From NCBI RefSeq assembly GCF_000142905.1, contig NW_013657670.1:149498-213125 (forward strand): DNA of 63,628 bases, written 5' to 3'. The stretch is from Thecamonas trahens ATCC 50062. Taxonomy: Eukaryota > Protista > Apusomonadida. The notes below the pieces were generated by a model. That model had not been told where the DNA came from. It ran no database searches and worked only from the letters and a program-made list of their open reading frames with translations. Below, piece by piece: positions 58,009 to 63,628 of the stretch. The translations under genes and the position numbers were made by a program. Position 1 is the stretch's first letter. Every line of letters begins with the position of its first letter.

Positions 58009-61000
58009 CTAGCACTCCATCTCTACATCGCCCACTCCACCGGCCGGCGTCGTCGATGCGCCACGGCACATGAGCCGCTCGCCCACAAACGATGACAGTG
58101 TCTGGCCAGCCTGCCCGCTCTTCCGCCACCAGTACACCACTCCGACCGCAAGGCTTGCAGCGAGCACAATTGCTGCTGGAATCGCGATTGCGGCAGCCAC
58201 TGCTCCGCTCGAGCTCGAGCTCTTGTCAGAGTCCGGCGGCGGCGGCGGCGCGCCCGTGCCCGGTGGTGGCGGCGTGCCGGCCAGAGCCCATCCAATCGAG
58301 AATCCTGTCCGAGCCTCGTCGCCGTTCGAGTGAAAGCGAACAATTGCATCGCCCGGGACTACCATCTGCGACGATGCTGCCAGACTGCCTGAGACCACGA
58401 CGCCGGCTGGCAAGATGGTGACGTAGTCGTGGACCGACTCGGTTGAAAACGCGCTCTTGTCCAAAGAGAGGACCAGGCTCTGCTCCGGAAAGTCAAAGTG
58501 CCACTCGCACTCGAGGTTGTGGGCGTACTCGAGGACACCCGAGTACGGGCCTGGCAGCTCGAGAGCTCCGGCAACGCCAGATGTTGTTGCATTGATCACC
58601 ATCGGCGCCTTGCACGCCGGCGGCGACCGGGTCCCGATTGCCCAACGCGCACTGAAGCCAGGCCGCGCGGTCCTACCGTCGGAGGTAAACTCGATGGACA
58701 TGTTGCTCGAGCTAGACGCGGTGAGATCAAGGTGGACCCCGCTATACTGCTGGCCGTCGATGGTGACAATGTCGTAGCCGGCCTCGGTGCTAAACCGTGA
58801 AAAGTGGAGGGCAATGTCCTTGCCCGGCGCTGAGATCTGCCACGCGCATGCCATGTCGTTGCCGTAAGGAATGCTGCCGTGGTACGGTGCTGGAACGGCG
58901 ATGCTACCCGAACTGCCGTTGGCTGAGCTGATGGTCTCCAGCCCGCTGCAGAGCGTGCGCGGGCCAGGCGGATGCTGCGGCGGCGGCGGCGGCGGCGGCT
59001 TGGACGATGCAGCGACTGCCGTCATGGCAAACACGCTCTTAGCAACGCTGCCATAGTAGAGGCCGGCGTACTGTCGCCCGCGCAGCGCCATGTTCAGATG
59101 CGTGGCGCCTGAGCTTCTGGCGCTCGTTACGGCCGCCGCCGGGATGAGATACGAGTTGTCGTAGTAAAAGTAGTACGAGAGCTCGGCCGTGTGCAGATCA
59201 GGGATGCCAGCAAAGCTAAAGAAGCCTTCGACAAACACAAATGTTTTGGAGAGAGCAAGAACAATGCCCTGTCCGTCGGGAACGCGGGCGAGCGGGAAAC
59301 GCGCGAAGTCCCACTCGCCGGCGTGGAGCGCAAAGTCAAGTGAGTCGATGCCAACCGCGTACTCGCGGACCGAAATACTGCAGTCGGCGCCGGCAGCGTA
59401 CGGCTCGCACGTGCAGCGGCCAGTGGCAGTGCTGCATCTTCCAGAGCCGGAGCACTCGCTGGCAGTGGCGGATGGGCACGAGGCCGGGCACGATCCCAAG
59501 CTAACCACGCCTCCGCCGCTGACCACCAGCGCAAACGGCTGCGGGCCGACAGGCGCGGCGTTGACAAAGACCCGGAGGGAGAACGCGCCCGAGACAACGG
59601 CGCGGATCCGCTCGACGTTGTTGTCCTGATCGTAGGTAACCTGATCACGAGGACCAACGTTGCCGACATACACCGCGTCCGAGGCAGTCAGGGTGAGATC
59701 CAGGTCAGAGACAAGCGTGACGGCTGCCGCCAACGATGCCGGCGGATCGGTCCACACGAGCGTGGCCGAGACTGAAGTCTTGTCCGCGACCGAGAAGCAG
59801 TAGGTGAGCGAGGTGCCGGCCGGCTGCGGGCCGATGTCAACAAAATGAAAATCACCCACCGCGGAGAGGTTGGCAGCACCAAAGCCCTCGCCCCAGCGGC
59901 GGACGAGGGTAGGCGCAGCATCGTACGCCGCCGGCGCCACCGCGCACACGCCCAACGGATCCAGCGGAGATCGGGGCACGGATGCAGTCGAGCCGGGTGT
60001 GGCGCTCGCCGAGTTGAGAAGGTAGGCCTTGACAAGTGCACCTGACGGCGACGGAATGGACGATCGCAAATGCTGGCGCACTAGCGCCGCCAGGCCGGCC
60101 ACTGCCGGGGCAGCCATCGAGGTGCCGGACTCGGGACGGAGCGCGGCGCTCTCGCCACAGAACGGGGTGCTGCCCGGACCATTGGCATGGGCAGAGATAA
60201 CCGGATCGCCGACAGCGACAATGTCAGGCTTGATTCGCAGCTCGCCGCGGACTGGCCCGAGCGACGAGAAGCAAGCCATATCGTCCGGCGACGGCGACGC
60301 CGGCACGCTTCCGTCGTAGTTGGAGAGCGTGACGAGGCTGCCAGTGGCGTTGGCCACATGCAGCGCATGAGTGAGGGTCGCGTTGCCGTCGGCGATGAGG
60401 ACCGGAATGGTAGTCGCCGACCGGGTGTCGGAAACGCCCACAATGTACCACGCTTTCTCGTGGATGACTGCCAGCGCGCCTGCGTCCTGGATGGACTTGG
60501 CGCACGAGTCATGAGGCGCCAGAGACGGGCACGCGTCCCAACAGATGCTGCACGGGCAGAGGAGGAGCACAATCTTGCCATTGACACCTGCTAGCGGCGC
60601 GTCGCAGGCCTCAATGATCACCACTTGGCCGGTGATGCTACCGTCCATGCCAGTGCCGACCATCCGTGCGCCGTACAAGGCCTTGACGAGCACACCTGAG
60701 GCGGCATCCGACGCCATGAGCGCGTAGCGGTACTTGGCGCTCGCGGCGTAGGCATCAGCCGTCGAGGTGAGGGCACCGACGTTGAGCGCATTCTTGGCGG
60801 TACCGGGCGATCGGACAGAGGAATAGCCATCGGAACCGTGATTGCCGGCAGCAAAGATGACGAGCATGTCAGGATTGCTCCATGTAAAGGTGTCGACGTC
60901 GCGGGCGTGGGTATTGTAGCCCGAGTACCCGGTCGAGCCCCACGAGTTGGTGTGGATGCGGGCGCCGGCTCCGTGCGGCATGCTGAAGAAGCGATCCGTG

Positions 61001-62148
61001 AGATCGGCAGGAACATGGAGCGCTTCGGACTCGTCGCCAAAGTCGTACATGATGATGCGCGCACCATAGGCGAGACCTTTGTTGGCGTTGGTGGTGGCGT
61101 TGGCGGAGGCGGAGGCGCTCCAGTCTGCCAGTCCGGCGACGGTGCCGGTGACATGGGTTCCGTGGCCGGCCGGCACATCGGTCTCAAAGGCCAGCTCGGC
61201 CTTGTGCCTAATGTACATGGCGAGCTTGCGATGGGCCGCGAGCGGCGTGTCGTAGGCCAGCGGCGTCGATGGATCGTGGAACATGCAGTTGTTGGTGTCG
61301 ATACCGGTGTCGGCAACGGCCACAATCTCACCCGCGCCGGTGATGCCGGCGTCCCAAAAAGGAAAGGCGGTGCCGGACGGATCGCCAGCCTGCCCGCGTG
61401 AAGCAGCGTGCCGGTTCATGCTCTCATACTCGGAGCGGTGCTCGACAGCGACGACGGTCGAGTCCGAGGCGAGGGCGTCGAGCGCGCACTCAACGCTGGC
61501 GGCGTCCGCACCAGTGATGGTGATGCTGAGCTTTCGCGGCGAGGGCTGATCCACGTCGGCTTCAGCGACGCAGCGGGCAAGGACGGTACGGATGCGGGAA
61601 AGCAGCTCGCTGGATGCCTCATGGGCGACAGTAACGGGTGAGAGGTCGACGATCAGGTCAAGCCGGGCAGACGGTTGGGAAGTGCGGCGGCGGCGGGCGC
61701 GCGGCCTGCGATGACGCGATTGGACATCGCCGACCCAGACGATCTCGTCAAACTGAAGGAGCAAGTCGTCGACAAACTGCGACTCGCAGTGAACATGCAG
61801 AGTCCGTGCCGGGAGATAGCCGACAAGAGCAGGGCGCACAGCGGCGATGAGAGCGTCGGACGGATGAGCAGCGGTGGTGATGAAGAACTGGGCGCGGCGA
61901 GTCTTGTCCACAGCCGACGATGACGACCGCGGAGCAGCGAGCAGCGTGGACATTGACGCGTGATGCAGATGCAGCGCCGCACCGCGGGAGATGTATCCGC
62001 CAGCTCGGCCGTGGATCATATGTCCATCACTCCGGCTAATGTCCGCGGCCTTTGCTTCGACCGGGACACCAAGACCATGCGACTCACCGGAGCATGGAGG
62101 CAGGGCCAAGGCGAGTATGGCGAGAACTACCACGCCTGCAACCATCAT
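58009..62148 (-). CDS. Membrane-anchored subtilisin (S8, Kp43/Tag-like) with PA insert, EGF, two CUB domains and TM
   Basis: VADTGID, GHGTHV, FAAGN, KPDIVA, SGTSMAAP; CSGSGRC..C.C; YGNDMACAWQI..FSTEAGYD; YAHNLECEW. Signal peptide from ATG 62148. Confidence 0.92.
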   Translation of the reverse strand: MMVAGVVVLAILALALPPCSGESHGLGVPVEAKAADISRSDGHMIHGRAGGYISRGAALHLHHASMSTLLAAPRSSSSAVDKTRRAQFFITTAAHPSDALIAAVRPALVGYLPARTLHVHCESQFVDDLLLQFDEIVWVGDVQSRHRRPRARRRRTSQPSARLDLIVDLSPVTVAHEASSELLSRIRTVLARCVAEADVDQPSPRKLSITITGADAASVECALDALASDSTVVAVEHRSEYESMNRHAASRGQAGDPSGTAFPFWDAGITGAGEIVAVADTGIDTNNCMFHDPSTPLAYDTPLAAHRKLAMYIRHKAELAFETDVPAGHGTHVTGTVAGLADWSASASANATTNANKGLAYGARIIMYDFGDESEALHVPADLTDRFFSMPHGAGARIHTNSWGSTGYSGYNTHARDVDTFTWSNPDMLVIFAAGNHGSDGYSSVRSPGTAKNALNVGALTSTADAYAASAKYRYALMASDAASGVLVKALYGARMVGTGMDGSITGQVVIIEACDAPLAGVNGKIVLLLCPCSICWDACPSLAPHDSCAKSIQDAGALAVIHEKAWYIVGVSDTRSATTIPVLIADGNATLTHALHVANATGSLVTLSNYDGSVPASPSPDDMACFSSLGPVRGELRIKPDIVAVGDPVISAHANGPGSTPFCGESAALRPESGTSMAAPAVAGLAALVRQHLRSSIPSPSGALVKAYLLNSASATPGSTASVPRSPLDPLGVCAVAPAAYDAAPTLVRRWGEGFGAANLSAVGDFHFVDIGPQPAGTSLTYCFSVADKTSVSATLVWTDPPASLAAAVTLVSDLDLTLTASDAVYVGNVGPRDQVTYDQDNNVERIRAVVSGAFSLRVFVNAAPVGPQPFALVVSGGGVVSLGSCPASCPSATASECSGSGRCSTATGRCTCEPYAAGADCSISVREYAVGIDSLDFALHAGEWDFARFPLARVPDGQGIVLALSKTFVFVEGFFSFAGIPDLHTAELSYYFYYDNSYLIPAAAVTSARSSGATHLNMALRGRQYAGLYYGSVAKSVFAMTAVAASSKPPPPPPPQHPPGPRTLCSGLETISSANGSSGSIAVPAPYHGSIPYGNDMACAWQISAPGKDIALHFSRFSTEAGYDIVTIDGQQYSGVHLDLTASSSSNMSIEFTSDGRTARPGFSARWAIGTRSPPACKAPMVINATTSGVAGALELPGPYSGVLEYAHNLECEWHFDFPEQSLVLSLDKSAFSTESVHDYVTILPAGVVVSGSLAASSQMVVPGDAIVRFHSNGDEARTGFSIGWALAGTPPPPGTGAPPPPPDSDKSSSSSGAVAAAIAIPAAIVLAASLAVGVVYWWRKSGQAGQTLSSFVGERLMCRGASTTPAGGVGDVEMEC

Positions 62149-62569
62149 CCGACCTTCTGTCGAACGCAGAGTGACAGGGGGTAGAGAGAGGAGTGTACGA
62201 ATGTGTCGACGTGGTCGCCTCTGACCCACCCATGCGGGGGAATGCGGGGGCGGGGGGCCATGCACGTGTGGCTGCGACATTTTTGGCGAGTATTGTCGCG
62301 TCAGGGGCAAGGCACGAGGTCGGGGTGTTAGACAGGTAGACAGATGGTAGTGTGTGAGGGAAAGATGGTGTGCGTGACGGATAAGCTCATTCTCCGGGTA
62401 GAGGGAGGCAAAGGGAAGTGCAATGAGTGTGTGCGGGGAAGGGGGGGAGAGGGAGGGGAGGGGGGAGGGAGGGATGAAGCGAGAGATCACTGTTCGGGAG
62501 GACGAGTTGGGCACCACGACCACATACATCCCCCCACACACACACAGACTCCTCCCTCCGGAATTACCC

Positions 62570-63510
62570 CTCCCGCTCGCAGGCTCGCGGTCGGGAGTCC
62601 CGGTGACAAACAGGGCTGTGGTGTGGATGACATAGTGCACACCCCGGGAGACCCCCTACATGAGGTGTCCTTGGACAGTGCGGGAGTCGTGGACAATGTA
62701 ATTTTTGGGGTCGCGCGACCTTCGGCTTCATCCGCGCTCAGGGCACCGGGTGAAGGGTAGCAACCAGTCACGGGCTCTGCCCGTGGCCGGGGGTGCACCC
62801 GGGGTCTTGAGCAGGCCGAGGAGCTTGACCACCAGGAAGGGGGGCCAGGGGAGGAGCCGGGCCCCTGGGCGCCAGGACGTAGTCCGTCTGGCGCCCTTGC
62901 ACATCCTTCCTCGTGGTCAGAAATGACCCGCCAAACGTCATGCGACCGGAGTCCGCAAGGGGGTGCGGTCTCATTCGAAGGGGGTTGACCGGCGGTAGGT
63001 GCACCTACCGTTTGTCGCCCCCGATGGTTGCGGTCAGGGATCCGTCCCTAAACGGCGCTGCGAGGTGTGGACGGATCAGCGGGGCGAGGGCGCATGCGCC
63101 CTGCTCACGCTGATCCTCCTAACCCCCCGTGGGATGTGTGTCCATCCCGCCGTCGGTCCGCCGACGGCAACCAGTGTCGTCACATGTTGTCGGCATTATC
63201 ATCCATATTGCCAACCTCTCCCTGGTGGACCGCCGGATGCTCGGTGGTCCTGAGCTGCAACCAGGACAGAGGTCGGCCTCTTGGAGGGTGGGATCTGAAG
63301 GAATATCGGCCGTCGGCGCCCCAGTGAGGGATTCCAAGTGACTAGAGTATCCTGCAGTCGATGTTGAGCACCCAACAAGTTGTACGCTGCACCACTTACG
63401 GATGTCCTATGTGGCGGCCGTCTTCTCGCCGTAGTGAGATCAGTGGTTCGCGGTACTTAGGGCCGGCGTACAATCCCACGGCAGGTGGCACCCTGCAGTT
63501 CCTGTAGGTG
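62570..63510 (+). ncRNA. Candidate ~950-nt highly structured RNA (or structured leader), family unknown
   Basis: Near-continuous hairpins with GAAA, GCAA, UCCG (twice) and UUCG loops, long-range helices and G-U wobbles on +; no credible ORF. Confidence 0.65.
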
Positions 63511-63598
63511 CTTCTCTGCTTAACTCCATGCAACAACTCTCCAGCACGTGATCTGGAACACAGGAGCTCTCAACAGCGCTGCTGTGTCTCGTCCATTG

Positions 63599-63628
63599 TC
63601 AACGCCATCTTCAACGCCATCTCCAACG
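63599..63628 (+). repeat. 12-bp tandem repeat (TCAACGCCATCT), truncated by window end
   Basis: Two full copies plus a partial third. Confidence 0.7.

Follow-up and report, generated by a model that had tools for sequence, protein, structure and literature searches.

A dispersed repeat at the window end

The window, a 63,628-bp stretch of the Thecamonas trahens ATCC 50062 genome, carries towards its right end a subtilisin-like gene on the minus strand (58009-62148, delimited from the list of open reading frames and the sequence), a (CA)6 tract at 62535-62546 and, from 62548 to the last position, 63628, the first 1,081 bp of a plus-strand element that we read as a retroposon. The extent of this element is given by its identity to copies on contigs C12, C16, C29 and C4 (C-numbers denote contigs of the organism's own assembly) and by a sharp 5' boundary common to them. 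The subtilisin-like gene lies outside the element and diverges from it, as had been noted earlier, its start codon being 399 bp from the element 5' end. The (CA)6 tract, also pointed out before, sits directly upstream of the element and outside its templated sequence, and represents either a microsatellite target site or the remnant of an earlier tail. A single extra G at the 5' junction (62547) is likewise untemplated by the element, as comparison with the other copies reveals.

The segment originally singled out as a structured non-coding block, 62570-63510, corresponds approximately to positions 24-964 (window-copy numbering) of a 1,495-bp dispersed repeat, whose complete reference copy is the unit at L014:2147-3641. 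Because the window copy carries two deletions, reference-copy positions run up to 10 higher beyond 62665. Complete copies begin with ACTCC and end with ...AAACTGATTCTC(AC)n. Inspection of the sequence downstream of 63628, which the original prediction had pointed to, shows that a 634-N assembly gap starts right after 63628 (C10:213126-213759; L011:1627-2260). About 413 bp of the window copy, including its 3' module and (CA)n tail, are missing in this gap, which the repeat probably caused; the element would thus explain the assembly break at the window end.

Changes private to the window copy comprise nine substitutions, a 9-bp deletion behind 62665 (plus strand, between 62665 and 62666) and a 1-bp deletion behind 62827. 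The extra 9 bp at 62665/62666 are present in all other genomic copies, in both metagenome copies described below and in the contigs spanning this site from three public sequencing runs (X12, X14 and X4). The window copy is a slightly decayed insertion. Near the window end, a 29-nt plus-strand block that contains CACGTG (CCAGCACGTGATCTGG...GGAGCTC, 63541-63569; columns 601-630 of alignment A1) hardly changes from young copies to those of only 75-88% identity, and is a candidate for a functional site in the RNA or DNA of the element.

The family was delineated by searching the organism's own assembly (28.7 Mb, 131 contigs). A first query with 62570-63628 returned 14 places, five of them near-identical; the block, whose copy number the original prediction had raised as a question, is thus not unique. 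In all, the element family gives 24 matches in the genome, amounting to about 20 copies. Five full-length copies (those on C12, C16, C29 and C4, plus the gap-cut window copy) share 98-100% identity; the four complete ones are 98.6-100% identical to the reference copy and 98.8-99.6% to each other, and the window copy is 98% identical to the reference and matches the four at 98.6-99.0% over its 1,082 bp. The last 160 nt of the element are present at 17 places, and in most partial copies the 3' end is retained and the 5' end lost, truncated copies starting at element positions 243, 951, 1281, 1301, 1331, 1339 (three copies) and 1451. The 5' flanks are unrelated between copies, and (CA)n stands at the 3' end of every copy. 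The three copies starting at 1339 form a diverged mini-family of ~157 nt, consisting of the 3' module alone and flanked by differing duplications. Because this 157-nt form has its own duplications, the ~160-nt 3' module appears to be enough for mobility, and the mini-form marks the part of the element that suffices for it.

Two further kinds of copy depart from simple truncation. The composite copy on C53 joins element positions 243-1072, a 34-nt filler and positions 888-1493 within one 13-bp duplication, a structure that would be expected from template switching. In three older copies (C16b, C15b and C11), what precedes element position ~600 is the 3' part of a kinase-like gene. On C16, the old 5'-truncated copy lies downstream of a kinase-like open reading frame (L010:28-1209, plus strand; C16:171360-172541) with a weak Pkinase match, and paralogues of this gene at C2:468643 and C2:357509 are without the element. 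The copies on C15 and C11 consist of the 3' part of the kinase-like gene plus the element, cut at different points. This association of gene 3' part and element on C15 and C11, together with the element-free paralogues, indicates that host sequence was transduced by a read-through transcript, giving chimeric retrocopies. A separate older subfamily with a different 5' ~600 bp was also considered and dropped, since the transduced kinase-like gene fragment explains that difference.

Insertion marks and recent activity

Target-site duplications of 13-14 bp, unrelated in sequence to one another, flank the full copies on C12, C16 and C4, and the full copy on C29 has a shorter, ambiguous duplication plus filler. 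Duplications of 10-13 bp likewise flank the 5'-truncated copies on C53, C8, C17 and C46, and a 13-bp low-complexity duplication candidate accompanies the truncated copy on C54. The tail, (CA)3-10, sits directly before the downstream duplication. At the 5' junctions, zero to two extra G residues stand between the duplication and ACTCC: the C16 copy joins ACTCC directly, and the C29 copy has a short filler ending in G before it. Extra G at L1-type 5' junctions is usually read as cap copying. Duplications, 5' truncation, (CA)n tail, extra G and composite and transduced copies are together the hallmarks of RNA-mediated, target-primed retroposition. The block 62570-63510 very probably belongs to a 1.5-kb retroposon that is non-coding and non-autonomous, and makes up the 5' two-thirds of a single copy. 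One of the identities offered in the original prediction, the structured part of a mobile element reaching beyond the window, was essentially right. The small family is new; its kind, the non-autonomous target-primed retroposon, is well known.

Public metagenome contigs were scanned once with a conserved 27-mer. The element was present in two contigs (98.5-99.8% identity), whose 5' flanks differ from those of all five full-length copies. In one of them, L060, the sequence next to the 3' junction occurs once in the assembly (C14:112114 onward), and the assembly is uninterrupted at C14:112113/4, which is thus an empty site. The 5' flank of L060 is a hAT transposon, and this contig may be a chimera of two insertions; the junction at C14:112113/4, full in L060 and empty in the assembly, nevertheless denotes an insertion absent from this assembly, chimera or not. 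A further novel 5' junction of the element was found in the estuary DNA run X4. An insertion absent here and copies that are 99.5-100% identical show that the family is recently active.

Two minor observations concern the same contigs. In X4, a contig has a diverged family segment resembling the 3' end fused, in inverted orientation, to the element at the internal position 63341; this is a nested or inverted insertion, or else the rearranged copy of a relative. The hAT-type DNA transposon of L060 (306-2846, minus strand) contains an 846-aa frame with weak BED zinc-finger, DUF659 and hAT-dimerisation matches; its copies in the assembly lie at C26:23060, C15:33796, C4:227969, C4:516460 and C9:404545, at least five being 100% identical over 969 bp. 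Shorter derivatives share one of its ends, and this transposon, too, looks recently active.

RNA, coding capacity and folding

Four public runs were mapped to 61000-63628: X4 (a DNA metagenome), X10 and X14 (metatranscriptomes) and X12 (probably RNA). Contigs from X10, X12 and X14, which stem from three studies, cover the element from 62547, 62558 or 62666 onward and leave the spacer 62144-62546 uncovered; X4 DNA contigs cover both the element and the subtilisin-like gene, which contigs from the RNA libraries barely touch. One RNA-library contig ends exactly at 62547, a second (1,062 nt) spans 62558-63609, and a third (1,367 nt) starts at 62666, reaches the window end and continues for ~397 nt, which brings it near the element 3' end. 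The word depth of this third contig is 108, as against ~2 for gene fragments, in a comparison of assembled contigs that give neither strand nor transcript ends nor a clean expression level, and in which any DNA carry-over would favour multi-copy sequence; even so, the fifty-fold depth difference exceeds the copy-number ratio of a ~20-copy element. Where the window copy has private alleles, the RNA-library contigs that reach those positions mostly show the alternative one (A at 63129 appears in X10 only), and those across 62665 (X12 and X14) have the 9 bp that the window copy lacks. Since these contigs carry the alleles of other copies, the RNA seen comes from those copies.

That the plus strand is the RNA strand, as originally proposed, is suggested by the polarity of truncation and tail. 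A T5 run at 62702-62706 on this strand would terminate RNA polymerase III, and a second run, T6, occurs at L014:3277-3282. From these internal runs and the extra G at the 5' junctions we infer Pol II transcription.

The element is non-coding, in agreement with the original description of the block: the longest plus-strand open reading frame within it is 94 aa. Ten open reading frames of 59-190 aa, from both strands, were tested for coding remnants and gave no Pfam match with E < 0.1, and a frame spanning the N gap past the window yielded only a sub-threshold low-complexity match. Nor did the element match a known RNA family, again as had been stated. Rfam searches of the window end and the complete copy gave a best E of 0.13 (gathering scores being 34-88 bits), with no covariance-model match to rRNA, RNase P/MRP, SRP, group I or II introns, self-cleaving ribozymes (hammerhead or other) or telomerase RNA. 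A SINE in the strict sense has a Pol III head derived from tRNA, 7SL or 5S and a length under ~600 bp. This assignment was considered and rejected, as no tRNA, 7SL or 5S head was found (Rfam, E <= 5), the main form is 1,495 bp long and T5 and T6 runs lie within it.

All 12 of the stems and loops listed for the block 62570-63510 were found by script in the plus-strand sequence, together with the cUUCGg loop at 62720-62725. Tetraloop hairpins lie at 62915-62928 (GAAA), 62952-62961 (GCAA), 63036-63049 (UCCG) and 63149-63168 (UCCG), all fully paired, three of them by perfect Watson-Crick stems and the GCAA hairpin by a 3-bp stem with one G-U. Local stems pair 62726-62733 with 62748-62755, 62767-62775 with 62779-62787, 62867-62875 with 62888-62896, 63073-63081 with 63108-63116 and 63227-63235 with 63242-63250, the longer ones having at most one G-U each. 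The long hairpin at ~62981-63022, with 14 Watson-Crick pairs, three G-U pairs and two mismatches, is the only mismatched one among the listed stems. Across these stems, wobbles on the plus strand are indeed G-U (seven G-U, no A-C).

Against dinucleotide shuffles, the 941-nt block folds with z = -6.2 on the plus strand (minimum free energy -473 versus -421 +/- 8.4 kcal/mol) and z = -5.9 on the minus strand, so that the suspected excess of folding is borne out on both. The near-equal extremes imply that the excess comes mainly from symmetric hairpins and perfect palindromes, and the z-score does not name a strand. The possibility, already raised as a caveat, that the stems are chance products of high GC with no biological feature behind them draws on the 58-68% GC of the window, but eight control windows of 941 nt and similar GC, taken elsewhere in the 63 kb, had z-scores of -2.8 to +2.3, which refutes GC as the sole source of the stems, and the sequence is a conserved multi-copy element; we regard this explanation as next to negligible. 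The block is a real folding outlier and not a by-product of its 63% GC. Two perfect palindromes, at 62994-63009 (16 nt) and 63088-63101 (14 nt), are identical in the four young full-length copies aligned, and could form hairpins or RNA-RNA dimer contacts.

A specific architecture is another matter. Both proposed long-range helices (63127-63134/63474-63481 and 63380-63389/63464-63473, plus strand) are present in the window copy, but the first is perfect only through G63129, which is private to this copy: all other copies have A, giving an A.C mismatch. In the second helix, a U-G pair at 63388 in the window copy corresponds to C-G in other copies, and the helix gains a mismatch in the old ones. 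Alignment folding with RNAalifold was carried out on element positions ~420-1090 of 10 copies, both young and 75-88% identical (the latter covering positions ~450-1090), and on the 3' module of 12 copies. The former segment gave 125 pairs, five with a double change, three of these five lying where the transduced gene fragment is misaligned, and an unfavourable covariation term of +4.96 kcal/mol; the 3' module gave 34 pairs, three with double changes, and a covariation term of -0.35 kcal/mol. Nearly all pairs are invariant or altered on one side only. Single changes often keep the pair through G-U, which is weak evidence fitting the plus strand. The block thus does fold better than expected, but covariation in neither segment supports a particular conserved architecture such as the original prediction envisaged.

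Mobilisation and alternative readings

We propose that transcription begins at the element's own 5' end, at ACTCC on the plus strand, and is probably carried out by Pol II, yielding a probably capped RNA that would end in the ~160-nt 3' module followed by the (CA)n tail. A reverse transcriptase acting in trans would recognise and bind the 3' module, prime on a nicked chromosomal target and copy the RNA into DNA, that is, carry out target-primed reverse transcription. Incomplete copying would leave 5'-truncated copies, staggered nicks would produce the 10-14-bp duplications, and read-through or template switching could account for the composite copy and the copies carrying host gene sequence. 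The dense hairpins would belong to the structure of the element's own RNA, possibly serving stability, protein binding or packaging, and not to a cellular function.

The reverse transcriptases detected in the assembly offer no obvious partner. A profile search with RVT_1 returned seven frames, six of Ty3/gypsy type and the telomerase reverse transcriptase (TERT). Of the five Ty3/gypsy-type frames classified, four combine reverse transcriptase, RNase H and integrase and one has reverse transcriptase and RNase H only; a weak reverse transcriptase match on C84 is a 99% copy of part of the C53 element, and the C20 element is nearly identical at the DNA level to that on C25. LINE- or Penelope-type reverse transcriptases were absent among these RVT_1 matches, first-look candidates from a gapped assembly. 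Exo_endo_phos_2 had no match in the whole-assembly profile search, and the 33 Exo_endo_phos matches all fall in frames shorter than 1,000 aa, none coinciding with RVT_1. A pattern search of the assembly with the 3' terminus found the family members and two one-mismatch sites only, no other repeat sharing the terminus. Stringent LINEs of the L2/CR1 kind have an ORF2 protein that recognises a stem-loop at the 3' end, with short tail repeats following it (PMC4176376). A LINE-type partner that is unassembled or was missed is favoured, with a Penelope-like (PLE) partner second; the identity of the enzyme would show whether this genome hides a LINE or PLE, or something less usual.

Several other readings of the block can be weighed against a target-primed retroposon. 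The assembly contains intact Ty3/gypsy elements, the only reverse-transcriptase-bearing elements detected in it, and the block could in principle be a solo LTR or the end of an LTR retrotransposon. Its ends, however, are ACTCC...(CA)n and not TG...CA, its duplications vary between 10 and 14 bp where a fixed 4-6 bp would be expected, its copies are truncated at the 5' end and anchored at the 3' end, it bears no sequence similarity to the Ty3/gypsy loci of the genome, and no terminal repeats occur within 10 kb, so that this origin is scarcely credible. A cellular structured RNA gene that was occasionally retro-copied, with one functional locus and most copies pseudogenes, would suit the apparent abundance of the RNA in RNA libraries and the exceptional foldability. 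Telomerase RNA would be an example; it has a single functional gene, a template of ~1.5 telomere repeats and, bound by TERT, conserved domains with a pseudoknot and a three-way junction. The telomere repeat here is TTAGGG (arrays stand at the starts of C1 and C2), TERT is the sole non-LTR-type reverse transcriptase detected, and CCTAACCC at 63118-63125 on the plus strand is complementary to 1.3 TTAGGG units. Chance alone, however, would produce ~0.3 such 8-mers in the two strands of a 1.5-kb sequence, and we judge it a chance match; it is absent from the lineage that has the transduced gene fragment as its 5' part, copies that were still retro-copied. Moreover, with 13-14-bp duplications around the C12, C16 and C4 copies and a shorter, ambiguous one at C29, none of these looks like a founder locus; the ~157-nt mini-form has its own recurrent 5' end, all copies have a (CA)n tail, and the helices lack covariation, one of them needing a window-private base. 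A retro-copied cellular RNA is accordingly very unlikely. The two foremost identities in the original prediction are not supported: a new family of large functional RNA or ribozyme does not agree with a ~20-copy mobile family showing duplications, 5' truncations and no covariation, whose RNA carries other copies' alleles, and telomerase RNA is unsupported, given the multi-copy mobile family and the lack of a match in Rfam. The block belongs to a selfish repeat; it does not represent a novel type of cellular RNA, and the false lead of a large catalytic or telomerase-type RNA is thereby removed.

Among retroposon readings, the element could instead derive from a Chlamys-type Penelope-like element as a non-autonomous form, dependent on a GIY-YIG endonuclease and a telomerase-like reverse transcriptase and not on a LINE; it would still be copied through RNA, by another class of enzyme. 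All copies end in (CA)n, with (CA)6 also next to the window copy, and Chlamys PLEs of green algae and protists show a (CA)n insertion bias and have non-autonomous relatives that share their 3' ends (PMC8557442). The partial tandem composite on C53 and the inverted 3'-end-like segment joined at 63341 in X4 would also suit such an origin. Against it, the RVT_1 matches include no PLE-type reverse transcriptase, the only two GIY-YIG matches in the assembly lie in short frames (345 and 270 aa), the Rfam search gave no hammerhead or other ribozyme, and the four intact copies are single units with clean duplications and no pseudo-LTR; Chlamys target-site duplications, by comparison, are often indiscernible (PMC8557442). 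We consider a PLE derivative unlikely. A genome that has no LINE or Penelope reverse transcriptase at all, in which the abundant, heavily folded 1.5-kb RNA of a recently active family, with its telomere-template-like CCUAACCC, is copied by TERT or by an unrecognised reverse transcriptase, or has been recruited by the host, seems more doubtful still.

As a target-primed retroposon, the element has counterparts in several known systems. SVA of humans and RIME of trypanosomes are LINE-mobilised, Pol II-transcribed non-coding retroposons. They are likewise kilobase-sized with their own 5' start, and show the same variable 10-15-bp duplications, frequent 5' truncation, extra 5' G and transduction of host flanks. 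In contrast to them, the Thecamonas element has a (CA)n tail in place of poly(A), only ~20 copies and no LINE partner detected in the assembly, and is unrelated to them in sequence. Like stringent LINE/SINE pairs of the L2/CR1 kind (PMC4176376), it has a conserved 3' module (here of ~160 nt, with predicted stem-loops) and a short tandem-repeat tail, but it lacks a tRNA, 7SL or 5S Pol III head, contains internal T5 and T6 runs and has a 1.5-kb main form. Non-autonomous Chlamys PLEs such as MRC1 of Chlamydomonas are (CA)n-associated, non-coding and recently active, with occasional tandem or composite copies (PMC8557442); unlike them, the element has intact copies without pseudo-LTRs and with clear duplications, and no PLE reverse transcriptase or endonuclease gene was found. 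The element is unusual in its length, (CA)n tail, strong foldability and missing partner, and the family is of modest interest as one that is recently active in a compact, repeat-poor protist genome and unusually well folded for its composition.

Some features of the genome noted along the way deserve mention. The TERT gene lies on the same contig as the window, ~48 kb beyond its end (L049:4167-7694, minus strand; C10:261166-264693), and encodes a frame of 1,176 aa with TEN, RBD, RT and C-terminal domains. The Ty3/gypsy loci, at L044:3929-7993 (C33), L045:1614-4988 (C25), L046 (C20) and L047:2885-7486 plus L048 (C53), represent at least three families with long open gag-pol frames (reverse transcriptase, RNase H, integrase and zinc knuckle), some of them near contig ends. 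One Ty3/gypsy element is adjoined by an array of at least 13 tandem units, each of ~135 bp (L047:1-1944, C53:29000-30943; L048:779-1031).
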